Notes under the pieces: generated by a model | What the model saw: only the letters and a program-made list of their open reading frames with translations | Database searches by the model: none | Told to the model about the DNA's origin: nothing | Position numbers and translations under genes: made by a program | In this document: positions 4,860-61,623 of the stretch, in pieces | Layout of the letters: every line of letters starts with the position of its first letter | Numbering within the stretch: the stretch's first letter is position 1 | NCBI RefSeq assembly: GCF_009834535.1 | Contig: NC_045705.1 | Location: forward strand, 34,348,001-34,412,000 | Reading direction: 5' to 3' | From: Camelus ferus | Lineage: Eukaryota | DNA length: 64,000 bases

Positions 4860-5035
4860 ATGAACATTTCACACATTACCTTAAGAGATCCTCAAACAAC
4901 TCTGTTAAGTAGTCACTGTTATCCGCATTTTGAAAATGGAGAAATTGAGACTCAGAGCAGCTAAATGAGTTGCCCAACATCCCACCACTGGCAAGTGGCA
5001 GAGTCAAGATTAAAACCAGTCTTGTCCTAAAACCT
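4860..5035 (-). mobile_element. MIR SINE fragment
   Basis: Core match: ttttgaaaatggagaaattgagactcagagcagctaaatgagttgcccaa. Confidence 0.7.
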
Positions 5036-12299: not shown

Positions 12300-12990
12300 A
12301 AGTTAAAATGCTTCATGGCAATTAGAAAATATAGACAAATATATGTGTAGCCTTGGAATAGAAAAGATTTTTCTAAACTTAATGCGGAAAGCAAAACCAC
12401 AAAGAAAAAAAAGGACAAGTTTAACTGCAATAGTGTTAAAAATCTGCCTGGAAAACAAAACATAAGGAAAATTAAAGGACAGAAGTTTAACCAAGGGAAA
12501 TATGCACACCTCATATGGTAGACAATAGTATACATATACATACATATACACACACACACACATCTTACCAACAAAATTTGGAAAAGATAAACCAATAGAA
12601 AAAAAATGGGCACAGTTATAATCAAGCAATTCACACACACAAAAAGATAATAACAGCTAATAATCTGATGAGAAAATACTCAACTGTACTAAGAGTCAAA
12701 GAAATGAAAATGGAACAGTGAGAAATTTTTTCTATTAAAAAGGCAAATGTTCAAAGTAGCAATAATATTGAATGCTACTGAATGCTCAGATACAGGAAAA
12801 TAGGCTGCTTCATGTACAATTGTTGAAAATATAAATTGTACCATCTTTCTGAAGGTCAGTTTGGCAACATGCATCAAAAATCATTAAATGTACATGCTTA
12901 AGCCTTAGCTCTTGTCCTGCTAAGAATGTAGCATATGCATATGTGTCCAAGTATGTTCATCTCAGTGCTATACATGATACTAAAAATGGA
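12300..12990 (+). mobile_element. Old L1 (L1M-type) ORF2 3' fragment
   Basis: A-rich degenerate ORF2 end: accaatagaaaaaaaatgggcac...aagcaattcac..., cagtttggcaacatgcatcaaaa. Confidence 0.7.
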
Positions 12991-17179: not shown

Positions 17180-17850
17180 AGAAACAATATAAATGTTCAT
17201 AAAGACTGGGCTACATTACCCAATGGAGTATCACATAGTGACAATTGTGAACAAATTACAGCTACAGGCAACAAAAGGGATTGACCTGAAGTGAAAGATG
17301 CTGGACACAAAATAATACCTATAGTATGATCGAATGCATATAAAGTTCAAAAACAGACAAAAGTAACTATGTTGTTTATAGATGCATAAGTTGTTAAAAT
17401 ACTTTTAAAAGGCAAATGATTATCATAAAAGTCAGGATTGTGATTAGCTCCAGTGGGGGTGGGGAGGTGGTAAGGGTGTAGCACTCTAAGATTTTTTTCA
17501 GTGTTTCATTTCTTGGTCTGGGTGACGGTTACACAGGGTAAGGTCTATAATTATGTCTTGCTCGGCTGAAAGTGAGCTATAGTTTGCAATAAAAAGTTTT
17601 TTTAAGCCACCTGATCATGTAACTAGTCTAAATATGCCAATTAAAAGACAAGTGTTCTCATCACACACACATACACAAAATCATAACTATGTATGGTGAC
17701 AGGTGTCAACTAGACTTATTGTGGTGATTGTTTCACAATACATACAAGTAACAGATAATTATTTTGTACACCTGAAACTAATATAATGATACATGTCAAT
17801 TATAGCCCAATAAAATAGTATCCAAAATAAAAATAAATAAATAAAAATAA
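17180..17850 (+). mobile_element. Two old L1 3'-end fragments (L1ME-like, then L1MA/MB-like)
   Basis: atataaagttcaaaaacagacaaaagtaactatg; tgtacacctgaaactaatataatgatacatgtcaattat plus A-tail. Confidence 0.7.
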
Positions 17851-18480
17851 AAGACAGAGACTGCAGAGTGGATTTTTTTTAAGACCCAACTATATGTTTT
17901 CCATAAGAAGCCCACTTTAAACATAAAGACAGAGATAGACTAAAAGTAATGCAATGGAGAAAGATAAACCAAAGGAAAGTTGGAGCATATATGTTAGTTT
18001 GAGATAAAGCAGACTTTAGAATAAGGACAATTATCAGATATAAGGAGAGATCTTTATAATGATAATGTTAAAGGGATCAGTTATCCGATAATATGTAACA
18101 ACATACAATGTGTATGCACCCTACAACAGAGTGTCAAAATACATCAGGCAAAAATGGACAGAAATACAAGGAGAAACAGACAAATTCACTACATAGTTGG
18201 AGACTTCAACACCCATCTATCACTAACTGACAGATCCAATAGGCAGAAAATCAATAAGGGTACAGTTGAATTAAATAGCACCATGTATCAACTGGACCTA
18301 ATTGATATTTATTAAGTATTTCCTCCAACAATAACATAATACACATTCTTCTCAAGCCCACATGGAACATTCACCAGGACAAACCACATTCTGGCCCATA
18401 AGGCATTTTATTCATAAATCATATAAAGTATGCTCTGAGACCACAGTGGAATTAAACTAGAAAGCAATAACAAAAGTTAG
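17850..18480 (+). mobile_element. L1 ORF2 endonuclease-domain fragment
   Basis: gttggagacttcaacaccc (GDFNTP), tacacattcttctcaagcccacatggaacattcacc, gaccacagtggaattaaactagaa. Confidence 0.85.
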
Positions 18481-18516
18481 ATCAGAAAGTTCGAATGTAG
18501 ATATATGTTGCTTAGT

Positions 18517-18743
18517 AACTTTTTAATAACTCCCATTGCATCTGCAATGGCCAGCTTCTCCAGTGAAAATTACTTTTTCATACAAATATCTGACCCTATT
18601 CCCTATGCTCATTATTATGTTATTAGGCTTCCAATCCAGTGTCCAAGGGAGCAGTGCAGATTGTGCCTGTGTTCAAGTAGAGAAGAGCAGAACAGTGAAG
18701 ATGGGGGACCTGGCGGGCTCACCTTTCTAACACAAAGGTAGGT
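18517..18743 (+). promoter_or_regulatory. Candidate promoter and first non-coding exon of OR4D6 (module 1)
   Basis: AACTTTTTAATAA-C-TCCCATTGCA at 18517-18540, TATTCCCTATGCTCATT...TATTAGGCTT block, CCTTTCTAACACAAAG|GTAGGT donor. Homologous to modules 2-5. Confidence 0.65.
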
Positions 18744-21660: not shown

Positions 21661-23125
21661 TTGTTTCTTTACAATACCTTGTTTATCATTTAAATTTAGA
21701 AAATTAACACATCGTTTGACCCATGTCTGGACTCACAGATGTACATGAAAATGCATTTGCAAAATGTTGAGAGCAGCATTATTTTAAAGTAGTAATTAGG
21801 GCCCAACTAGGCAAACTGAAGAGGGCAATGTATGACTTGTGGCCCCATCCCCTCCTGCACGTTCTACAAGCCTGACTCCCAAAGCCACCCACAGACCTCT
21901 AGTTTCCAAATTCCCCTTTCCAACCCCCGTCTCCCAAGGCTGCTGTGCGCTCCTGGCTAGTGCCCCATTCCACTCCAGCCTTCACGACCAGTGTTTACTC
22001 TTGACCTGCCTGATTGACATATACCTGTGAAAACCAGTCTCTACCTTAGTTACCAATGTATTTACCCATCACATTCCACAAAAGATCAGGAAGGTCATAC
22101 AGCAAAAACTACAAAACACATACAATAAGCAATAATATGTAGGTAAGAAACTGTTACGAGACAACACCTGAAAAAATACGGAGTAAGAAGTTGAGCCACA
22201 TCTATACTTTGGAGTGTATGAAGGACAAAACAAAGCGATATGGCCCAGTACGTAGTCCTCATTACCTAAGAAGAAGAATCTTACTGGTTTCCCAGGGGAG
22301 CTGTCCCTTAACACATGGGTCTTGGATAAACATTTCTCTTGTGGTCTCAAATAAGGGGAACTGAATAAATCTTGCCCTCAATACAGTCCTGAGGTAAGGT
22401 CTTCTTTGTAGACACCCTTGATAAAAGGCAGTAACTTAAGTCCGAATATAGGGTACCATTTGCATAGCTTTCTGTCATTTGCTAGGTGGCAGTTTAAAAA
22501 AAAAAAGGCTGTATGGGAATCAGTTCTAGGTAATGTGCCACTGAATGCCAGGCTATTAAGTGAGATTCCCATTGGATCACATTTTTTTTTAAACCCTTAA
22601 AGGAAATTCACTTTTCCACAGGAATTAAATTGTTCTAATGGTGAGAACATTAGGAATCTAGGAAAATCAAGAAAACCTTTTTATTTAGGAGGCTTTCTGT
22701 ATGTCCTAACTCCTCAGATTAAACCATAAAATGCACCCAACTGTAACAGAGCTGAAAAAAGAAACATCAAGAAATAGGTTGTTTGCAAGATGCTTTACTA
22801 TGCTTTTGCTTCACAGAAAATGATCTGTCCTTTTTTTTATCCAGTTTACCTCTTCTTTCTCATCCTATTTTCTTCAAATATTAATTCCATTGCTCCAAAT
22901 ACAAAACTGTCTACCTTCTATTGTTGAACTGGATTTTGACCACCTTAACTATTTGAATTTTTTAAAATTATCTGGTTGATGAGAATTCTTGGACATAGAG
23001 ATATTCTTATTAAAGGGAGTTTGCACTCTGGTGACCAGATATCTAATTTGAAAAAAAAAAACTATTTTTCTGTAATATAGTAGTAGGAGAAAGTTGTTGG
23101 AATTTAATTCAATAAACCTGGTCAA

Positions 23126-24430: not shown

Positions 24431-24862
24431 TCTATAGACCCCCAGAGAGACTATAGAGTATCTATATGGGAATCCAAATCAGGATGATGTTACAGGTGAA
24501 GCCTTTGGTAAAGGATAAAGCTTTGCGTACATGTGAAGTTATTCTTACAGGACAGAAGGTAAGTCATAGCCAAAGGACCATCTTCATCTCTCTCTGTCAG
24601 ATGAAGGACATAGGAGTATGATGGTTCTTCCGGTCAACCCGGGCTATTTACAATAAAAAAGAAGAGTCATCAGGGCAAAAATTTTTCAGATCTTCACAAA
24701 AAGGAAGACTCAAGCACAGGTTTTCTAGTAGTCATGAAGATCTAAACGCTTAAAAGAGCCTTGTATCAGTATATGATCCATGATGTTGCCCCTTATGACA
24801 CCATACTCCTAACCCTAACATATCTTCTTCCAAGATAGACCTGGATGAAGGTGGTCCCCATC

Positions 24863-27429: not shown

Positions 27430-27433
<4 letters not shown>

Positions 27434-27468
<35 letters not shown>
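27434..27468. repeat. (TG)17 microsatellite just 5' of module 2
   Basis: Directly visible. Confidence 0.97.
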
Positions 27469-27494: not shown

Positions 27495-27852
27495 CTGTTT
27501 AATAACCCCCACTGGAACTCCAACACTAGCAGAAGAATGTCCATCCTCTTTTCACACTCACATTCAGTAAAATCCCCTTTGCTAATTCCCATATTAGGCT
27601 TGCACCTTGGGGATTAGTGAGCATAGCAGGGACACTTTGGGACAAGCAGAAGAGCTATGATGATGTAACTCCCCACGTCTGCCTTTTCCAACATGAAGGT
27701 TGAAGAGAAGACACTGAAGTCCAGTATAACTAATCTTCACAAGAACTTCACCTCTAACGTGCTAGTTCTTCAGCATCACATACACTGAGGCCCAGCTACC
27801 CAGTCTCAGAAGGTGTAAATTCCTGGTTGGATACTGAAGGATTTAGGTAAGA
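27495..27852 (+). promoter_or_regulatory. Candidate promoter and first exon of the OR4D-like gene at 31.5 kb (module 2)
   Basis: TAATAA-C-CCCCACTGGA at 27500-27516, AATCCCCTTTGCTAATTCCCATATTAGGCTTG, GCCTTTTCCAACATGAAGG, donor TTTAG|GTAAGA at 27847. Confidence 0.65.
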
Positions 27853-30985: not shown

Positions 30986-31531
30986 TTAAAGCTATAAATT
31001 GACACAACATTGTAAACTGACTCTACTTCAATAAAAATATAATACGTAAAAAATATAATATGTTATTGAAGTTGATCCGTATCATGTTGTTACAGAAAGG
31101 CATTTGAGGGTTGATTTACTCTAACGGCTTTTAAGTCTAATGGCTTTTAAGCCATAGGAACAAAGTGGAATGTGAATAAAATCACAGTTGCTCTGATTCA
31201 CAAAGGCACAGGGAACCCACAACTGCTTCCACAAAACCTTCCTTAAGTTCTCTTCCTCGGCAACTTCTAGAGGTGGACTCTATCAGAAGCCAAAGGTCCC
31301 CATCAAGCTCAGTAAGGAAATGACCCTACAACTTGTACTAACCAGGGAGTGAAACAAGAGGAACTGAGGGATTTCTCCAGTTAACACAGCAAGTTCATGA
31401 AGAATAAGATACATGAGTTTTTGAATGATGTGTGTTCAATTTCTGTATGAGACAAACCTTTGCTTGATTTCATTGCCTCAGTAATATTATTATTTCGTTC
31501 AAAGCTGCACATGGAGAAAGGAATTCTTCCA

Positions 31532-32467
31532 ATGGCCTTGAGAAATCATACCAGGGTGTCTGAATTTATTTTTCGTGGACTGACCCAGTCTCAAGAACTG
31601 AGCTTGCTCTTATTTTTCTTTTTAGCTATAGTTTATGTAACAACTGTGTTAGCAAATATTGCCATCATGGTCACCGTGACCTGTGACTCTCGCCTTCACA
31701 CCCCCATGTATTTTTTGCTCCGTAATTTGTCTATTGCCGATATCTGCTTTTCCTCCATCACAGCTCCCAAGGTTCTGGTGGACCTTCTGCGACAGAGTAA
31801 GACCATCTCCTTCAATGGCTGCTTCGCCCAGATGTTTTTCTTCCATCTTATTGGAGGGGTGGATGTATTTTCTCTGTCACTGATGGCCTTAGATCGGTAT
31901 GTGGCCATCTCTAAGCCCCTGCACTATGTGACCATCATGAATAGAGGCTGCTGCGTTGGGTTNNNNNNNNNNNNNNNNNNNNNNNNNNNNNNNNNNNNNN
32001 NNNNNNNNNNNNNNNNNNNNNNNNNNNNNNNNNNNNNNNNNNNNNNNNNNNNNNNNNNNNNNNNNNNNNNNNNNNNNNNNNNNNNNNNNNNNNNNNNNNN
32101 TGACATTTTTATGCTTGAGCTGCTGATGATTTCCAACAATGGACTGCTCACCACACTGTGGTTTCTCCTCCTCCTGGTGTCCTATACAGTCATATTATTA
32201 TTACTGAGGTCTCAAGCAGGGGAGGGCAGGAGGAAAGCCATCTCCACCTGCACGGCCCACATCACGGTGGTGACCCTGCACTTTGTGCCCTGCATCTACG
32301 TCTATGCCCGGCCCTTCACTGCCCTCCCCACTGATAAGACCATATCTGTCACCTTCACCATCATCATCCCTGTCCTGAACCCCATGATCTACACCCTGAG
32401 GAACAATGAGATGAAGTCAGCCATGAAAAGACTGAAGAGAAGACTCACGCGTTCTGAGAAGGAATAA
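31532..32467 (+). CDS. OR4D-family olfactory receptor, probably intact (311 aa if the 138-N gap is real length); OR4D10-like core with distinct ends; alternative in-frame ATG at 31511
   Basis: [50 protein letters not shown]. The frame is kept across the gap at 31963-32100. Orthology is uncertain, so no symbol is given. Confidence 0.8.
31963..32100. other. Assembly gap (138 N) inside OR CDS
   Basis: Run of N. Confidence 1.
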
Positions 32468-39745: not shown

Positions 39746-40393
39746 AAAATAGAGGTGGAAAAAATACCCATCTCAAACACACAATCTGTACCATGCAGTT
39801 TTTATCTTTGTAGACTAGTTGAATGTACAAAAACAAAATCGAAAAGCAGTTAAATTCATCATCATTCAGGGAAACAGTGAAATCAGATTCTATATAAGAT
39901 GAAACCATCTAATAAACTGAGTTCAACTTAAATAACTACTGCAATTGTGTGGACAGCTTTACATTAGTACTTATCTGATAGCTGTATCGAAATTGAGAAA
40001 TTCCTTTGAGTAGAGTGTTGGAAAACAGGAAAACTGTGCATTCCCCAGACACCACCTAAGTCATGTTTCTCTACGTGAGGAGACTCATGAGACATAATCA
40101 TCCAGTGTATAATCAGAAACTGGACTAATAGCAAATGATTTGAGGTCCAGCTCTCTTCTTCTAGCTTTTTGGCAATATAATTAAAACTCCTTTGTCTATG
40201 ATATCCTCTGAGCCTTGCAAGCCATCAGAATTGGACCTTTTTAGTCTCTTGGGAACAGCAATTGGCATATTTTAACAAAGTTCTGATTGAGCCGTGGATA
40301 AAGTCACAGGTTTCATCTACTGCCTCTAAATAATTTGGACACCAACCAAAATGTGTCCATGTGTGTGTGTGTACACATGTGGATGTCTCAGTG

Positions 40394-40743
40394 ATTTTTA
40401 ATAACTCCCACTGAAAATTCGTCACCAGCAGCAGAATCAGGCACCTGACTTTCACTTCCTTGTCCAGTAATATTCCCTTTCCAACTTTTATATGAGTCCT
40501 GAGACTGAGAGATTTGTGCGAAGACAGGAACACAGTGAAAGAACCATCAGGATGTGATTCATTGAACCTGCCCTTTCTCTCCTGAAAGGGGAGAAAAGAC
40601 ACTACAATATTTAGTCCTCCAAAGGGCTTTATCTTCAGAAACAAAATTTTCAAGAATTAATGTCACCAGTGCTTTGTTCTGTACCCTACCTAATGGCATA
40701 CAATTGGTACTTGGAGTTTCAGGATCAAAAGAATTAGGTAAAG
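40394..40743 (+). promoter_or_regulatory. Candidate promoter and first exon of OR4D10 (module 3)
   Basis: TTTTTAATAA-C-TCCCACTGAA at 40395-40415, TAATATTCCCTTT, GATTCATTGAACCTGCCCTTTCTCTCCTGAAAGG, donor ATTAG|GTAAAG at 40738. Confidence 0.65.
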
Positions 40744-43215: not shown

Positions 43216-43440
43216 ATAGACACAAAAGTTAGTTTTATAGGAAAAGAATTATTGAATGATTTTGCCTGTGATTTTTTGATTTGATCACTAAACAGATTGT
43301 AATCTTAAAAATCTGGACAACTCAACAAATTGCAACCACTACCACCACATGGGAAACATTCTGATTTGCATTCATAGCACTTAAGAAGAAAATGCACGTT
43401 CGTATGAAATAGCTTGAAAGGAGAAAAAGAAGAAGATTCA

Positions 43441-44376
43441 ATGGAGCTGGGAAACTGCTCCAGGGTAAAAGAATTTGTTTTCCTTGGCCTAACCCAGAAT
43501 CAAGAACTGAGTTTGGTCTTATTTCTTTTCCTACTTTTGGTGTATGTGACCACTCTGCTGGGAAACCTCCTCATCATGGTCACCGTGACCTGTGACTCTC
43601 GCCTTCACACCCCCATGTATTTTTTGCTCCGTAATTTGTCTATTGCCGATATCTGCTTTTCCTCCATCACAGCTCCTAAGGTTCTGGTGGACCTTCTGCG
43701 ACAGAGAAAGACCATCTCCTTCAATGGCTGCTTCGCCCAGATGTTTTTCTTCCATCTTATTGGAGGGGTGGATGTATTTTCTCTGTCAGTGATGGCCTTA
43801 GATCGGTATGTGGCCATCTCTAAGCCCCTGCACTATGTGACCATCATGAATAGAGGCTGCTGCATTGGGTTNNNNNNNNNNNNNNNNNNNNNNNNNNNNN
43901 NNNNNNNNNNNNNNNNNNNNNNNNNNNNNNNNNNNNNNNNNNNNNNNNNNNNNNNNNNNNNNNNNNNNNNNNNNNNNNNNNNNNNNNNNNNNNNNNNNNN
44001 NNNNNNNNNTGACATTTTTATGCTTGAGCTGCTGATGATTTCCAACAATGGACTGCTCACCACACTGTGGTTTCTCCTCCTCCTGGTGTCCTATACGGTC
44101 ATATTATTATTACTGAGGTCTCAAGCAGGGGAGGGCAGGAGGAAAGCCATCTCCACCTGCACAGCCCACATCACAGTGGTGACCCTGCACTTTGTNNNNN
44201 NNNNNNNNNNNNNNNNNNNNNNNNNNNNNNNNNNNNNNNNNNNNNNNNNNNNNNNNNNNNNNNNNNNNNNNNNNNNNNNNNNNNNNNNNNNNNNNNNNNN
44301 NNNNNNNNNNNNNNNNNNNNNNNNNNNNNNNNNNNNNNNNNNNNNNNNNNNNNNNNNNNCTTCTGACAGGGTATAG
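43441..44376 (+). CDS. OR4D10: OR4D10 orthologue, probably intact (311 aa if gaps are real length); gaps at 43872-44009 and 44196-44359
   Basis: ATG at 43441 (the track start at 43414 is TTG). [43 protein letters not shown] and C-terminal SDR match OR4D10 as recalled. The frame is kept across both gaps. Confidence 0.8.
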
Positions 44377-46390: not shown

Positions 46391-46606
46391 GCGTGGATTC
46401 CTCGCTGCAAGTGTTTCCTGTGAGAACCCCATCATCCGCTTTGATCATCAGCCCACCGAGATCTCCTTCAAGCTCACCTGCGTACCTCTTCCGATCCAAA
46501 GGTTCCTTCCAATACTCATGGGTCACACTTCAAAATCTCCCCGCAGGGATGAAGCTGCCTATGGAAGTTGTTCACAATACCTAAGAATAGACATTTATTT
46601 CCCAAG

Positions 46607-46973: not shown

Positions 46974-47298
46974 CCTGTTAATTACTCCCACTGAAACAAC
47001 TTCTCCATCAGCAGAATTTTTCCAGAGCCACTTCCAACTATATTCCCCCTGATAATTCCCACACTAGTGTTGGGATTAAGGAACTGGTAAATATGATGGG
47101 GCCCTGGGAATCAGTATGAAGAACCAAGATAATATGATTCCCTGAGTCTGCCCTTTTCCACATAAGGGTGGAAGAAAGCCATTGAAATCACTGCCTGCAA
47201 AGGGATATTTGACAGAATATTCCAAAGCTGAATGATTCCTGGGAACATTATATATGATGCTGGAGTCCTGGAAATAAGTTTGGAGATCTTAGGTAAGA
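46974..47298 (+). promoter_or_regulatory. Candidate promoter and first exon of OR4D11 (module 4)
   Basis: TAATTA-C-TCCCACTGAA at 46979-46995, TATATTCCCCCTGATAATTCCC, O/E-like GCCCTGGGAA at 47101, GATTCCCTGAGTCTGCCCTTTTCCAC, donor CTTAG|GTAAGA at 47293. Confidence 0.7.
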
Positions 47299-51132: not shown

Positions 51133-52068
51133 ATGGAGCTGGGAAATGGCACCAGAGTAAAAGAATTTATATTCCTGGGACTTACTCAGTCCCCAGACCT
51201 AAGCTTGCTCTTATTTCTTGTTTTGTGTTTTGTGTACATGACGACTCTTCTGGGAAACCTCCTCATCATGGTCACCGTGACCTGTGAGTCTCGCCTTCAC
51301 ACCCCCATGTACTTCCTGCTCTGCAATCTAGCCATCCTGGACATCTGCTTCTCCTCCATCACTGCTCCCAAGGTCCTAGTAGACCTCCTGACCAAGATAA
51401 AGACCATATCATACACAAGCTGCATGATGCAGATGTTTTTCTTCCACCTCCTCGGTGGGGCAGATATTTTTTCCCTCTCTGTCATGGCCTTTGACCGCTA
51501 CATGGCCATCTCCAAGCCCCTGCACTACGTGACCATCATGAGCAGAGGGCGATGCGCTGCCCTCATTGTGGCCTCCTGGGTGGGGGGCTTTGTCCACTCC
51601 ATCGTGCAGATTTCCCTGTTGCTCCCACTCCCCTTCTGTGGTCCCAATATTCTTGACACGTTCTACTGTGATGTCCCCCAGGTCCTCAAACTCGCCTGCA
51701 CTGACACCTTTGCCCTTGAGCTGCTGATGATTTCCAACAATGGCTTGGTCACAACCCTGTGGTTTATCTTCTTGCTTGTGTCCTACACAGTCATCCTCAT
51801 GATGCTGAGGTCCCAGACAGGGGAGGGCAGGAAGAAAGCCATTTCCACCTGCACCTCCCACATCACGGTGGTGACCCTGCACTTTGTGCCCTGCATCTAC
51901 GTCTATGCCCGGCCCTTCACCGCCCTCCCCACGGATAAGGCCATCTCTGTCACCTTCACTGTCATCTCCCCTCTGCTCAATCCTATGATCTACACCCTGA
52001 GGAACCAGGAGATGAAATCAGCCATGAGGAGACTGAGGGGAAGACTCGTGCATTCCATAGTGGGATAG
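51133..52068 (+). CDS. OR4D11: OR4D11 orthologue, intact, 311 aa
   Basis: [54 protein letters not shown] match OR4D11 as recalled; gene order fits. Confidence 0.9.
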
Positions 52069-53830: not shown

Positions 53831-54904
53831 TACTCAGGTAGCTCTGGTCTCTGGACTTCCTAAGCTTTTCTTTATGAACTTGCCTATGAAAAAATGCATA
53901 CCACAAATCACCTTATGAACCATTTCATGCAAATATGTCCTTTCTTTTACTTTCTGTCTCTTTTGACTCACTCAGATCATAGTTTTATCACTATGTCAGA
54001 ACTTGATGGCACCGAAGACCTATGGAGTCTGAATACTGCATCTCAGAAGCATAATCCCACGAAGGCAGGAACTCAGGAACCCCAGCCACAACACTGTCCC
54101 TGATACTTCCTCAAACTATATCTAAATACGCAATATAATCTGATTCAATAATTCAGAAGAAAGGGAAAGCAATTGCATCTCATTACACAAAGATATATTT
54201 TTTAATCTGGATGACATAAAATCACAAGCTGGGCTGCATTTTTCTCATTTAAATCAGTTTTTACTATTTTTTAAGCTCTGCTGCAAAGAGTCATAGAAAA
54301 TTCAACAGACTCTGGGCACATAGATAGCTTTAAAACTACCCTTTCCTACTTTACTCCCCTGAATCAAACATTTTCATGATAAGCATCTCTGGGTACTCAT
54401 GGACCACATAACACAAAAAAAAAATTCTGAAGTAATTAAATTGATGAGTATCAAGAACTGCCACCATGCTTCCTCCTTAGGTTCTAAGTGAGCCACGGAT
54501 CCCTGAGATGCAGAGGAAAATAATTACATAGGGACAATGTACATGTCATATTAAACAGAAATTGTATGTATAAATCTACACCATCCAGTCTCTGAGAGCT
54601 ACCTTGACAGTAGCCACAGAGGTTTGATTTTTCTATTGTTACCCTCTTACTTTAGTTTCACTCCCCCAGCTGATTGCAAGCAAAGCACTTCTGATAAGGA
54701 GGGAAACTGCACAGTCCATAGGGTGGTTTAACACGACACTTTCTACCTCAGCCAAGGGGGCTAAGGCACTGTCTCATGCGGTTCCTCTAGAGAAAGAGAA
54801 AAAGCTATGTCCTGGATGTGCACTTAGTGTCTCTGCGCGTATCTGTGAGATGGGGCAGAGAAGAGATGAGGGAGGGGGAGAGAGACGGAGGAGGAGCGCT
54901 TGGC

Positions 54905-55138
54905 AACTTTTTAATGACTCCCACAAGAGCACCATTGAATTGGCCACTCAGCTTCCACATTCATTCCCAGCAATATTCCCTTTGCTAATTCCTTTATTAG
55001 GCTTGTGGCTGAGGGACCAATAGAGGTGGCCAAGGTACCGTAAGGCAACGTGGAAGAGTCAGAATGATGTGATTCCCTGAGGCTGCCTTTTCCCACCTGA
55101 AGGAAAAACGTAACAAAATCACTACCCTTAAGGTAGGC
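54905..55138 (+). promoter_or_regulatory. Candidate promoter and first exon of OR4D9 (module 5) with exact H/P-element 13-mer
   Basis: AACTTTTTAATGA at 54905-54917 then C-TCCCACAAGA, CAATATTCCCTTTGCTAATTCCTTTATTAGGCTTG, GATTCCCTGAGGCTGCCTTTTCCCAC, donor TTAAG|GTAGGC at 55133. A consensus O/E site CCCCAGGGGA lies at 55414. Confidence 0.72.
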
Positions 55139-56394
55139 AGTCCACTACACAGAATTTCCCCAGAACCTACTCCTTCTGAGATGCAGTTGGAGCATCATAA
55201 AAGGATCGATTTTTCACCTGGAGACTGAGTCCGTTGGTGCTGGTATGTGTGAACTTCCGAAACTGAAAAGCTCTTTGTGTTGATGTTTTAGAAACCCTGC
55301 AAGTGTATAGAACGTTCCTGTTGAAACCAAAGCTCTTAACGAAGCAAAGCAGTAGTTTTTCACTATTAGGAAGAGGGGACTTGAGTCTTGCAAAACAGAA
55401 GAAGGTCAGTTGGCCCCAGGGGAGGTGATGCATTTTACTTGGTAGGATGTTGAGGTTTGAACTGTTCTGAAGGTACTTGAGAAAATGCGAATATCCCCAG
55501 CTCTCAGGAGGTTGACTGCTTTGGAGAAACAGCACTTAAAGAGAACAGTTCCTGAATTCAGTATATGCAGTCTGGCCAGCTTTGCTTCTTGGCTAGAGTG
55601 GAATTTGAGGGGCTTTGAGCAAGGTGTTTTAATGGCTAGCTTATCTGTGCCCTCATGTGCTACTGAATATGAATAATGCTCCTAAAACTTTTAGGAATTC
55701 AGTCAAGAGTAGAGGCTGTTCAGTATTGGGAAAGAGGAAACAGACGTGGGAGACCTGGCAGAGATTCAACTCAGTGGAGAGAACAGAGCAGCATTCTTAG
55801 TAGGAACCTGGGGTGTGCAGGTAACCCTCAGTTTGTGGGCTCTGTCCAAGGTGTTTGATAAGCTTGTTTCCAAAGGGTGGTTCCCTTTTGGGTGATTTCT
55901 AAGAAAGCCTCGTGATCCTACTTCTGACTTTGCAAAAACACATAAAACTGTATTCCTTTAACCAGTCTCCCCTCTTCCCTCTTTAGTGTGCTTGGGTTTC
56001 AATGCAACGTGCATAATTCTGCACTTTCAAAGTATCGTTCCCAGTCTTTGTAAAAAAGACAGCATCCATAGGAACCCACAATACCCATTATTATTTTGAA
56101 GTAATGCCACGCAGAAGTCGTTTCTGCATCTAACATTAGAGTACTATGTAGTTGGTGCAGGTTCTTGGTTACGGTACCGCTGAGGACTGCAAAGTCTGCT
56201 TTTCAAACTTTGCTTTATTTTCCCAAGTTACTTCTGACATGCTTTCGTGTAAGTAAGTCACTCTCAACCAAACTTTTCTCTCACCGTGTGCCGGCTTCTA
56301 ACGCCACTCTCTTACACTCACATTCTACATTCACTTGATTTGCAAAGGATTTTTTTTTACTTTGCAGGAGTTTTGGGGAAGGGCTGATCAACAC

Positions 56395-56600
56395 TGGGAA
56401 GAAATATAGTTGCAGTAATTAAAAGCATCAGACTTTGGAATAAGGCAGATCTCAGTTTGAGACGTGGCTCTACCAGCAGAGAAACTTTGAGCAAGTTACT
56501 TAATCTTTCCATGCCTTGGTTTCTTCCTCTGTGCAATCAGGATAATATTATCTATTTCACATGGATGCGACAGGTTTTGGAAGCGATAAAATGAACATAA
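56395..56600 (+). mobile_element. MIR SINE
   Basis: agcatcagactttggaataaggcagatctcagtttgag...gagcaagttacttaatctttccatgccttggtttc. Confidence 0.75.
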
Positions 56601-57593
56601 ATATTCACTAAAAGCAAGTAAAAAATAAGCCAAGCAGACCTCCGTTATTCTGCCCATATTTTTAGAATGCTGCGACCTTGAAAGTTGCTTAGACCCTCTC
56701 CTACCCACCCACCCACCGAAGCCTTACAGCCAGACTACTGGATTTCAGATTAAGGATTATAGTTTATTTTTTTTCTGTAATGGTTTTTTTTTTAATATCA
56801 ATACCTGTATTTACAACTGCATACAGAAATCAATTTATTTATATCTGTAGGCAGATGTGTGATACAATATTCTGACTTTTTTTAACATATGCCTTAGTTC
56901 AAATCCCTAAGCAAAAATGAAAAATACCGCTAGAGGATAAATGGCATTTTACACTTATTCCAAATTGTTGGGAAGAGGGTTTTGAACCACAGGATTTGTA
57001 GCAAGTTGAGCTCCTCTCAGTTAAGTCCCCACAAAGGGACCTGTGAGGCAGACACACCCACCTGGAGCTAGTGAGGGTGGGAAGCCACTGTCCAAACCAG
57101 AATCTTGAGCTGCTTTCAGTTTGCAAAACAGACTTGCAATCTTGCCTACGCCTTAGAAGAACCTGGCTTATGAGAAAGGTCTTACTATCATCATATTGTA
57201 GATAAATTACAATAGTACAACCATGTCCTGTGAACCTCACACACGTTGCTCAGGAGTTTGGTACTATGACTGAGTAACTTGCCCAGGGCCAAACCAGCTA
57301 GGAAGTGGTTAAACCCAAACTGCACAAAGAATTTGGATGTTCCACATATGTGTCTCCAAAATGCAAGTGTAGGTTATGATACTGTCCCAGAAGGCCTCCT
57401 GGACAAGGTTTACAAATCTTATTTGCCCAAATGGAACTGTTTTTCATGTATATCCCCATGATTTTGTACCCCCTCGCTTTTCTTTCTGCCGATCCCACAA
57501 ACTGCAACACTCTTATTATCTTAACTGTAAATTCCTTAAGGAAAGGACCTATATTTGAGTCACCTCCCTTTCAAAAAAATCATCTCTATGTCA

Positions 57594-58115
57594 TTATGAT
57601 GGTTAAATTTGTGTGTCAGCTGGACTGGCTGCAGGGTACCCAGATGAGACATTGTTTCTGGGCATTTTCAGATGAGATTAGCATTTGAATTGATGGACTC
57701 AGTAAAGCAGATTAATTGTCCCCCCTACCATAGATTGACTCCCTCCAGTCCATTGAGGGCCTAAATAGAACAAAAGAGGGAGAGGCAGGAGAAACGTATA
57801 CCCTTTATTCTTGCCTTACTGCTTGAGTTGGGACATCTTGTCTCATCACATAATTTACACCGTGGGCTCCCCTGGTTCTCAGATCACTGAACTGGACAGA
57901 ATTACAGCATCAGCTCTCCTGGGGCTCTAGCCTGCAGGCAGGTGGCGGGACTTAGCCTCCACAGTGGTGTGAGCCAGCTCTGTACAGGAATTCTCTCTCT
58001 CTCTCCCTGTCTCTTTCTCTCTCTCTCTCTCTCATGTGTTTGCATATAGATAATGTAGGCTGTATACAGATATAGATATAAATCCTATTAGTCTTATTTC
58101 TGGAGAACCCACATA
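57594..58115 (+). mobile_element. ERVL solo LTR (MLT2-type) with internal (CT)n
   Basis: tgatggttaaatttgtgtgtcagctggactggc...gatgagattagcatttgaatt...tcctattagtcttatttctggagaaccc. Confidence 0.85.
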
Positions 58116-58771
58116 CAGTCATGGAAAGACATCTGGAGGAAGGAGAGAAAATAGAAATAGTAAAGAAAGACAGGAGAGAGGAAAAGGGAGGGAGGGAGAG
58201 AAGGTGACACAGGGAACCCTTAATCTTGTCGCGTGGTTTCTTGAGCAGAAGATTTGAAAACCATGCCCTTATCCTTCCAATATCCAAAAGAAAGATTCTA
58301 GAGTAAGACGCTGTCATCAGTTAAAATATCTCTGCATTCCAGATTAACCAAAGACTACTTTGGGGATGATTTCTCCACTTTGTAGTTATGGCAAGTAGTT
58401 AGTTCAGGGAATTTTAATTCTGGGATGCTGGGCACCTGAAACCTCTGGGATCGTTCTTCTGATCTGAAGACTCATTCTTATCACTCCAAATTGTTGAATG
58501 AAACACCAATAATTAATAACAATGGAATGAGAAAGGGGGCTCTTATCTCATTTTTTGGTGTGAGTAGAAAGGAGAGTGCTGCTTGGGGAACTGTGATCTT
58601 TAAAAGATTTTTTTTTAAGATTAGAGGAGCAAAACTGGAGAAAAAAATAGAAGAATTAAAACCAGAATTGGAGAAAGAACTATATGTGGACAGCAGGGCA
58701 ACTGCTTAAGACAAGAATTTGGGAGGACCTAAAGTAAGAAAGAGAGAGAGAGAGATAAGAAGATAGCTCTC

Positions 58772-59203
58772 AACAACATGACGCCATTTGCAGTAACATG
58801 GATGCTCCTGGAGAATGTCATTCTAAGTGAAGTAAGCCAGAAAGACAAAGGAAAATACCATATGAGATCACTCATATGTGGAATCTAAAATAAATAAATA
58901 AATAAATACAAAACAGAAACAGACTCATAAACATAGAATACAAATTTGTGGTTGCCAAGGGGGCGGGGGGGTGGGAAGGGACAGACTGGGATTTCAAAGT
59001 GTAGAATAGATAAACAAGATTATACTGTATAGCACAGGGAAATATATACAAGATCTTATGGCTCACAGCCAAAAAAAATATGTGACAATGAATATATGTA
59101 TGTTCATGTATAACTGAAAAATTGTGCTCTACACTGGAATTTGACACAACATTGTAAAATGACTATAACTCAGTAAAAAAAATGTTAAAAAAAAAAAAGA
59201 AGA
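58772..59203 (+). mobile_element. Type-B L1 3' end with poly(A) and 14-bp TSD
   Basis: Flanks agaagatagctctc (58758) and agaagacagctctc (59204). Confidence 0.9.
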
Positions 59204-59359
59204 AGAAGACAGCTCTCTGGTTGTAGCTGGTAAAGGCTATAACTTGACTTATTATAAAATAACCATTAGGAAAGTGAGTGGTCAATTAACTTTTACCTTA
59301 AGTGAAATTCACTCTTTAGACATGAGATTAAAATGTTATATAGCAATCTCCATACTTGT

Positions 59360-60370
59360 TTTTAACATTTTACCAAAGTACAACAGAAAAACTCACATGA
59401 GCCTACAGTTCCATGAATTGTCACACAAGCTGAATGTATCTTTGCAACAAGCACCCAGATCAAAAAAAAAAACAAAAAACAAAAAAAACAGAACATTATC
59501 AGCACCTCAAAAGTCTCCCTCATGTTCCCTTTAGTTTTGTGTATTTTTGTTCTTCATGTGAAAGAATAAGGGTGTGTGCACCCTTTTGTGTCTGGATTAT
59601 TTGGCTTAATATTATGTTTGTGAGATTCATATATATTGTTCCCAGTGTTGGGAACATCCAGGGTAGATTATTCCCATTGTCGCATAGTAGTGTGTGAGTT
59701 TAACACAATTCACTTATCTTTTTTACTGTTAATGGGCATTGGTGTCATTCCTCAGTTTTAAGTAATTCCAAACAGTGCTGCTGTGAATATTCTAGGATAT
59801 GTCTTTTGGTGAACATAACATAGTGCACATACTTCCCAGGGGTGGCAAAGATTGTTCTTAACAGGGAGATAAGTAGATAAATAGGTAGATTGATTGATTG
59901 ATTGATAAACAGATAGATCAATCTCCATCTTAAGATAATGAATAATAAAGATATAGATATTAGCATTAGTAGATATAATCAAACAGTAAACTGGTTATTT
60001 TATACAACCCCCAGCATGTGTGAGGGTTTCAGTTGTTCCACATCTTCACCATCACTTGGTATTTTTCATCTTTTTCAACTTAGCCATTTTGGTGTGTAAG
60101 CAGTAGTTTCTTGCCATAATTTTAATTTTCATTTCCCCAGTAATGAAGTTGAACTGGCATTTGGATATTCCAAGTGAAGTTTTGGTTTGTGCCTTTTGCC
60201 ATTTTCTGGTTTGGGTATCTACCTTGTTTTACTGATTTGTAGAAGTTCTGTATATATTCTGGATGTGACTCTTTTCTTAGACATATTGTAAATGTCTTCT
60301 CCCATTTGTGAGTTCTATTTTAATTCTCTTAACGATGCTTTTTGTGAACACAAATTCTTCGTGTTGTAAA
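59360..60370 (-). mobile_element. Old L1MC/ME-type 3' fragment
   Basis: gcacccagatcaaaa...cagaacattatcagcacctcaaaagtctccc; ccagcatgtgtgagggtttcagttgttccacatcttcacc. Confidence 0.7.
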
Positions 60371-60687
60371 ATTTATGCTTATTATTTACTAAGTATCATA
60401 TGTTACAGTAAAAGTAGAATTGAGTAGGTTCACAGACCTGCCACCTGTGTTTCAGTGGTCACAGTGATAGAACCTATCTGTTTGAACGACTCCAGTCAAA
60501 ACCCAGGTCATCTTCTACCTAATGGCAGAATACAGAATTGCAGGCAGAGCCCGTACATGTAAAAGGAATTTCCTAGGCGAACACCAAATACATGGGACAG
60601 AAAGGACAACAGTAGATTTCATAACACGTTATTTAACGGCACTGTTATTTCTTACAGAGATATACCTGAAAAAGAATCTGTGCCCCA

Positions 60688-61623
60688 ATGGATCAGGGAA
60701 ATTATACCAGAGTGAAAGAAATTATTTTCCTAGGAATTACCCAGTCTCGAGAGCTAAGCTGGGTCTTATTTGTCTTCTTGTTTTCGGTGTACATGACGAC
60801 TCTGATGGGAAACCTCCTCATCATGGTCACGGTGACCTGTGAATCTCGCCTTCACACCCCCATGTACTTCCTGCTCCGCAATCTCTCTGTGCTTGACATC
60901 TGCTTCTCCTCCATCACAGCTCCTAAGGTCCTAGCTGATCTTCTATCAGAGAGAAAGACCATCTCCTTCAATGGCTGTGTCACTCAAATGTTCTTCTTCC
61001 ACCTTCTGGGTGGAGCGGATGTTTTTTCTCTCTCTGTGATGGCCTTTGATCGCTACATAGCCATCTCAAGACCCCTCCACTATATGACTGTCATGAGTAA
61101 GGAGAGATGCACCAGCCTGGTGGTGGCCTCCTGGGTGGGGGGCTTTGTCCACTCCATCGTGCAGATTTCCCTGTTGCTCCCACTCCCCTTCTGTGGTCCC
61201 AATGTTCTTGACACATTCTACTGTGATGTCCCCCAGGTCCTCAAACTCGCCTGCACTGACACCTTCACTCTGGAGCTCCTGATGATTTCCAATAACGGAC
61301 TTGTCAGTTGGTTTATATTCTTCTTTCTCCTCATATCTTACACAGTCATCCTCATGATGCTGAGGTCCCAGGCAGGGGAGGGCAGGAAGAAAGCCATCTC
61401 CACCTGCACCTCCCACATCACAGTGGTGACCCTGCACTTTGTGCCCTGCATCTACGTCTATGCCCGGCCCTTCACTGCCCTCCCCACGGATAAGGCCATC
61501 TCTGTCACCTTCACTGTCATCTCCCCTCTGCTCAACCCTATGATCTACACCCTGAGAAATCAGGAAATGAAGTCCGCCATGAGGAAATTAAAGAAACGAC
61601 TCGGGCATTCGGAAAAGATTTAA
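60688..61623 (+). CDS. OR4D9: OR4D9 orthologue, intact, 311 aa
   Basis: [57 protein letters not shown] match OR4D9 as recalled. Confidence 0.92.

Follow-up and report, generated by a model that had tools for sequence, protein, structure and literature searches.

The window analysed here, the whole 64-kb stretch of DNA, contains six odorant-receptor open reading frames, all on the + strand. The frame at 60688-61623 (+) is the 311-amino-acid coding exon of OR4D9, being identical to alpaca OR4D9 at 310 of 311 residues and 90-92% identical to OR4D9 of cattle, horse, and rhinoceros, and the frame at 24845 is OR4D6; a preliminary description of this DNA had named both genes correctly. Runs of N at 31963-32100, 43872-44009, and 44196-44359 break up two OR4D10-like coding exons. 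BLAST of the region upstream of OR4D9 against the window, followed by alignment, showed that every tandem OR4D gene has one of five homologous modules, all of which open with TTAAT[G/A/T]A-C-[T/C]CCCA and share two more blocks, ATATTCCCTTTGCTAATTCC..TATTAGGCTTG and GATGTGATTCCCTGAG.CTGCCYTTTC.

A standard odorant-receptor gene consists of a promoter, a short non-coding exon, an intron, and a single coding exon. The modules are read here as the predicted proximal promoter and non-coding exon 1 of the OR4D gene to which each belongs. Module 1, the predicted OR4D6 promoter, carries TAATAA-C-TCCCATTGCA within AACTTTTTAATAA (18524..18540, +), with a GT donor at 18738 ahead of the coding exon at 24845. 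Module 2 (TAATAA-C-CCCCACTGGA; 27500..27516, +) would serve the OR4D10-like gene at 31460, module 3 (TAATAA-C-TCCCACTGAA; 40399..40415, +) the odorant-receptor gene at 43414, and module 4 (TAATTA-C-TCCCACTGAA; 46979..46995, +) the one at 51133. Module 5 belongs to OR4D9. Each module lies upstream of its gene, on the same strand and in one copy per gene, and the accompanying GT donors and AG acceptors are signals read from the sequence. The donor is found 220-350 bp past TAAT in each module (about 220 bp for OR4D9), the coding exon 3-6 kb downstream of each module, and a polypyrimidine-AG acceptor ~10-30 nt 5' of the start codon in the three OR4D genes with an ATG start. The predicted intron 1 of OR4D9 spans 55133..60657 (+), with the donor AAG/GTAGGC at 55133 and an acceptor, ...ttatttcttacag, ending at 60657. 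Read contigs over 54850-56400 are scattered, low in depth, unspliced, and DNA-like, and one of them spans the OR4D9 donor unspliced; because the contigs covering this stretch have this character, both exon 1 and the start site are given here as predicted features only.

Several features flank the modules. An L1 ORF2-like fragment, recognized by eye at 18200-18490, adjoins module 1, and because of this L1-like sequence the homology of module 1 to the other modules starts only ~25 bp 5' of the homeodomain site. Tracts of (TG)n lie 30-60 bp 5' of the homeodomain site in module 2 (27432-27468) and module 3 (about 40360-40385), and remnants of such tracts are seen in module 4 and in OR4D9 orthologues, while module 5 has instead a GA-rich tract at 54861-54897.

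The sequence AACTTTTTAATGA, known as the "extended homeodomain site" of the mouse H and P enhancers and the P3 promoter, is present exactly at 54905-54917 (+), where shuffles of the window predict 0.01 occurrences. A copy with 12 of 13 matches, AACTTTTTAATAA, lies at 18517-18529 (+) in module 1 of OR4D6, and weaker variants are found in module 2 (GCTGTTTAATAA, near 27500), module 3 (GATTTTTAATAA, near 40399), and module 4 (CCTGTTAATTA, near 46979), so that all the sites listed in the preliminary description are present. Matches to the 13-mer with one mismatch or none are expected 0.51 times per window, and two or more such matches occurred in 13 of 100 shuffles. All sampled words of 54700-55300 are contained in six sequencing runs labelled as the same organism, which argues against an assembly error.

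The 13-mer ends in the homeodomain core TAATGA (54912..54917, +), which fits the TAATKR definition of an Lhx2-type site (PMC5638857). An O/E-like (Ebf-type) site, TCCCACAAGA (54919..54928, +), starts 7 nt past the T of TAAT, and the two sites together form the pair TTTTAATGACTCCCACAAGA (54909..54928, +), that is, TTTTAATGA-C-TCCCACAAGA. Compared to the O/E consensus TCCCNNGGGA, the site of the window's species has two mismatches and its ancestral form, TCCCACAGGA, has one. Module 4 has TAATTA at the homeodomain position, and modules 1 to 3 have TAATAA, which falls outside TAATKR. The pattern TTAATDAYYCCCA matches the five module sites only, all on the + strand, against 0.04 matches expected in the 64-kb window; as it was written post hoc, with the sites already seen, the main argument is that of homology and position. 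An AP-1-like reading of TGACTCC was dropped, as the paralogues and hedgehog disrupt TGACTCC yet retain TAAT and TCCC.

For comparison across species, OR4D9 loci with 10 kb of flank were taken from cattle, horse, rabbit, white rhinoceros, pangolin, hedgehog, two-toed sloth, alpaca, and dog. The dog locus P0078 was rejected as OR4D9, being a paralogue whose locus lacks the module, and the true dog OR4D9 is P0122. A module was found 5-8 kb 5' of the OR4D9 coding exon in all nine species. The OR4D9 donor is kept in most orthologues. In the horse OR4D9-like copy (L002, ~4940-4955), the exon-1 donor AGGTAGGC of the other species is replaced by AGCTAGGC; splicing of this copy may involve an alternative donor or an alternative first exon, and the gene structure of OR4D9 is therefore not universal.

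In an alignment of 1.6 kb, the score of each position was the proportion of the eight non-camelid species with the same base as the window. The pair at 54909-54928 ranks first among 1582 20-mers, with an identity of 0.925 against a regional mean of 0.64, and it remains first with hedgehog removed. By the same measure, the OR4D9 coding exon has a mean identity of 0.892, which is lower than that of the pair. No block scores higher than the pair among the five paralogues either (0.805, with an overall value of 0.383). TTTAAT is invariant across all aligned orthologues, and the distance from TAAT to YCCC shows no insertion or deletion in 17 of 17 copies (the five paralogues, the nine orthologues, two further sloth paralogues, and one anteater copy). 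Within the 13-mer, the conserved part is only 54909-54917 (TTTTAATGA), with an identity of 0.958, while the AACT flank at 54905-54908 scores 0.44, below the regional mean. The earlier reading of the site as a homeodomain site in regulatory DNA of an odorant receptor thus stands, with strong constraint on the core TTTTAATGA and the adjoining O/E-like site and not on the AACT flank.

These measurements bear directly on the possibility that the 13-mer is a chance match with no function. Such a sequence is AT-rich, and extrapolation from 0.01 per 64 kb gives a few hundred chance copies per 2-Gb genome. However, five paralogues and ten species have the site at the homologous position, and it lies in the most conserved block of the region, which makes the chance reading scarcely credible. 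For the core it is refuted by conservation; judged from the alignment, chance holds only for the four flank bases.

Other conserved segments accompany the pair. The second conserved block, ATATTCCCTTTGCTAATTCC followed by TTTATTAGG (54971..55002, +; 0.856 in orthologues and 0.72 in paralogues), includes a TATA-like box, another TAAT-type site, and an O/E-like half-site, each with a putative function. The third, GATGTGATTCCCTGAGGCTGCCTTTTCCCACCTGAAGG (55066..55105, +; 0.888 and 0.838 in orthologues and 0.71 in paralogues), contains a further O/E-like site, TCCCTGAGGC, and would lie either within the predicted exon 1 or just 5' of the start site. The second most conserved 20-mer (0.90) is TGAATTGGCCACTCAGCTTC at 54936-54955, which includes an inverted CCAAT (ATTGG) as well as an NFI half-site (TTGGC) and is common to module 1 and absent from modules 2 to 4. 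Conservation extends beyond the predicted exon-1 donor at 55150-55198 (for example, CAGAATTTCCCCAGAACCTA, 0.84), where there may be a longer first exon in some transcripts or more regulatory sites in the early intron. Other paralogous promoters keep the homeodomain and O/E pair as well, namely at 17499 and 20817 of the sloth locus L007 and at 12664 of the anteater locus L011 (ACATTTTAATAACTCCCATTG, AACTTTTTAATAACTCCCACTG, CTGTTTAATAATTCCCACTGG).

The exact 13-mer has a different history from the pair. It was found in none of the nine other species examined, contrary to the expectation in the preliminary description that it be conserved in orthologues. Alpaca has GACTTTTTAATGA (12 of 13 matches); horse, rabbit, pangolin, and dog have GACATTTTAATGA (11 of 13); cattle (GACCCTTTAATGA), rhinoceros (GACATTTTAATAA), and hedgehog (GACATTTTAATGG) have 10 of 13; and the sloth site at this position has one T fewer. 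The seven other non-camelids range from 10 to 11 matches. Only the window's species has all 13. On these aligned states, the exact 13-mer is the product of two substitutions in an ancestral GACA flank. One, from A to T, is shared with alpaca; the other, from G to A, is seen in the window's species only, and the last flank substitution therefore took place after the split from alpaca. As far as these sequences tell, its identity with the mouse H/P 13-mer is incidental, a lineage-specific coincidence.

The variants at the paralogues had been presented as graded departures from the exact 13-mer. Instead of a decay series around an ideal, they are old and stable paralogue states. The module 2 variant, CTGTTTAATAA(C/T)(C/T)CCCACTGGAACTCC, is preserved nearly unchanged in anteater, where the Tamandua module 2 orthologue (L011:12647-12874) retains CTGTTTAATAATTCCCACTGGAACTCC, and a sloth paralogue carries AACTTTTTAATAA. 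In Tamandua, 10 kb of upstream sequence yielded no orthologue of the OR4D6 promoter.

The preliminary description had proposed that the exact 13-mer is a high-probability choice element, that more neurons choose OR4D9, and after it OR4D6, than the other paralogues, and that module 5 might in addition act as a local enhancer, as P does. P is homologous to the P3 promoter region, which shares the 13-mer, and promoter-type elements may therefore act as enhancers. The literature on which the proposal was based is correctly stated: the 13-mer is common to H, P, and the P3 promoter (PMC7804114; PMC5638857), and 4x, 5x, and 9x multimers of the 21-bp H segment, of which the 13-mer is the core, raise the probability of choice (PMC7804114; PMC12547500; bioRxiv 10.64898/2026.09.23.753647), by 8- to 100-fold. 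However, the published effect needs four to nine tandem copies and there is one here, and because that effect is one of multimers upstream of a transgene promoter, the literature does not support an effect of a native single copy on choice. Furthermore, the flank that completes the 13-mer is unconstrained and species-specific, and each module is tied to its own gene. Taken with the expression data below, this proposal is very unlikely to be correct.

An enhancer role finds no support in the window. When the window was scanned, homeodomain and O/E sites formed no outstanding enhancer-like cluster, and no module without its own gene was found in the window, every copy lying at the 5' exon of its gene. 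The extra O/E site that had been noted at 55414, CCCCAGGGGA (55414..55423, +), is real as a sequence and lies inside the predicted OR4D9 intron 1, but YCCCNNGGGR has two matches in the window against 2.39 expected, and the conservation of the site (0.562) is below the regional mean; it is probably non-functional. A perfect O/E consensus, TCCCAGGGGA, is found at 22290-22299 in the predicted OR4D6 intron, and such sites occur at chance level window-wide. A further sequence with composite-type spacing, TAATTTTCCTCTTGGGA, lies at 46600 (-), on the strand opposite to module 4 and ~380 bp upstream of it, and is probably a product of chance.

Expression data from human tissue bear on the predicted order of choice. 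In human olfactory mucosa, qPCR gave values of 190.6 for OR4D9, 10.3 for OR4D10, 7.9 for OR4D6, and 2.6 for OR4D11 (PMC4011832). OR4D9 is thus at the top, 18- to 70-fold above the other three, in agreement with the first part of the prediction, but OR4D6 is not second, and human OR4D9 expression is not attributable to the motif either way, as the human promoter sequence lies outside the comparison. The human lead of OR4D9 fits its having the sole pair of TAATGA and a near-consensus O/E site among the modules.

Olfr1423-1428 at chr19:12.04-12.12 Mb are presumably the mouse OR4D genes. In published mouse source data, their promoters have composite scores of -0.23 to 4.94, all below the permissive cut-off of 5, and they are listed as "nonGI", with class "Lhx2" or "NoLhx2_NoEbf", and unbound in bulk neurons. 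The FPKM values of the six genes are 15.9, 8.3, 4.7, 17.5, 30.2, and 61.1, and neither motif class nor composite score tracks them (Spearman about -0.2, calculated by hand, n=6), which would again speak against the 13-mer as a choice element.

The spacing of the pair raises the possibility that the OR4D promoters are true Greek Island-type Lhx2/Ebf composites, to which the two factors would bind cooperatively, heterochromatin notwithstanding, and which would serve as self-sufficient promoter-enhancers. The arrangement TAAT-N3-TC(C/T)C-N2-RRGA is that of the Sfaktiria probe, the ancestral OR4D9 O/E half (one mismatch) is closer to consensus than that of Sfaktiria (two mismatches), and the spacing is free of insertions and deletions in the 17 copies. 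Spacing matters in Sfaktiria, since a 2-bp insert at its homeodomain-O/E junction impairs competition for an Lhx2-Ebf fusion protein (PMC5608512). A local element would also be useful to these genes, the nearest mouse Greek Island being 715-790 kb from Olfr1423-1428. However, composites are reported to be enriched in islands and depleted from odorant-receptor promoters (PMC5608512; PMC12547500), and the promoters of the mouse cluster have the low scores and classes given above. Some mouse odorant-receptor promoters nevertheless score above 10 for the composite, with values of 11-13 in the published source data, and a promoter composite is therefore uncommon and not unheard of. The modules themselves are not intergenic elements serving several genes. 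On this evidence, the composite reading is unlikely. Its evolutionary form, in which the OR4D family would have kept a composite Lhx2/Ebf site in each promoter since before the eutherian radiation, is likewise improbable. If true, it would break the rule that composites are absent from odorant-receptor promoters; a cluster far from any island would recruit the choice machinery by itself; and the stable paralogue variants (TAATGA or TAATAA, and the quality of the O/E half) would set different choice frequencies.

Collectively, these results point to a simpler explanation. The 13-mer region is very probably the OR4D9 proximal promoter, in which TTTTAATGA and the O/E-like site, held at the fixed spacing TAAT-N3-TCCC, would be the working unit. 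O/E and homeodomain sites are enriched within 200 bp upstream of odorant-receptor start sites (PMC3247239; PMC5608512), and the constraint on the pair among both orthologues and paralogues is consistent with such a role. Three observations count against the promoter reading, namely the TAATAA of modules 1 to 3 as opposed to TAATKR, the two O/E mismatches in the window's species, and the loss of the donor in horse.

In the promoter reading, the cluster arose by duplications that left each tandem OR4D gene with its own diverged copy of the module. If mouse odorant-receptor promoters are a guide, the adjacent sites would be bound, after release of the locus from heterochromatin, by an Ebf/Olf-1 dimer and a homeodomain factor, either Lhx2 or one such as Emx2, perhaps assisted by the further O/E-like and TAAT-type sites 60-160 bp downstream. 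Transcription would start probably between about 55010 and 55100, and the outcome would be OR4D9 transcription in those neurons that chose OR4D9.

These findings have several implications. First, an attractive over-reading is corrected, in that the promoter element appears to be old and ordinary and its exact match to a famous 13-mer recent and accidental. Second, the phylogenetic footprint narrows the candidate functional unit of the OR4D promoter to a 20-bp homeodomain and O/E pair with fixed spacing. Third, the five variants at the paralogues, all of which seem to have been stable over tens of millions of years, offer a natural series for relating site quality to choice frequency, and the locus provides a concrete candidate for studying the importance of composite-type spacing within a promoter. 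The present understanding of odorant-receptor regulation does not change.

Compared to the H and P elements, the OR4D9 site shows both likeness and difference. The extended site AACTTTTTAATGA of H and P is matched at 13 of 13 positions, the 21-mer of H (ACATAACTTTTTAATGAGTCT) is matched at 15 of 21 positions, and a T-rich 5' flank followed by TAATGA is present in both. In contrast, the OR4D9 site is a single promoter copy and not a part of an enhancer or a multimer, and its exact form is lineage-specific. Multimers of the H 21-mer work without O/E sites (bioRxiv 10.64898/2026.09.23.753647).

Compared to the Greek Island composite described by Monahan et al. in 2017, as in Sfaktiria (AACTTTTTAATTGATCTCCAAGGAA), the OR4D9 pair has its homeodomain and O/E sites in the same order and at the same spacing, as is seen with the composite EMSA probe AACTTTTTAATTGA-TCTCCAAGGA (TAATTGA-TCTCCAAGGA), and the O/E half is degenerate in many islands, as it is in OR4D9. 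The T-rich lead AACTTTTTAAT is common to Sfaktiria and the OR4D9 site and therefore recurs outside H and P. However, the OR4D pairs are located at gene promoters and the Greek Island composites in intergenic islands, and the putative mouse counterparts of the OR4D promoters are below the composite threshold and unbound in bulk neurons.

The closest likeness is with mouse class II odorant-receptor promoters, of which Michaloski 2006, Young 2011, Clowney 2011, and Plessy 2012 are said to be genome-wide surveys that include homeodomain and O/E sites. [quoted passage not shown] Mouse class II genes, like the OR4D genes, have an intron of a few kilobases before a single coding exon and one promoter per gene. 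The OR4D promoters differ in that their start site is a predicted one, that a fixed spacing of 3 nt sets the two sites directly side by side, and that the pair can be traced through orthologues from sloth to camel and through five paralogues.
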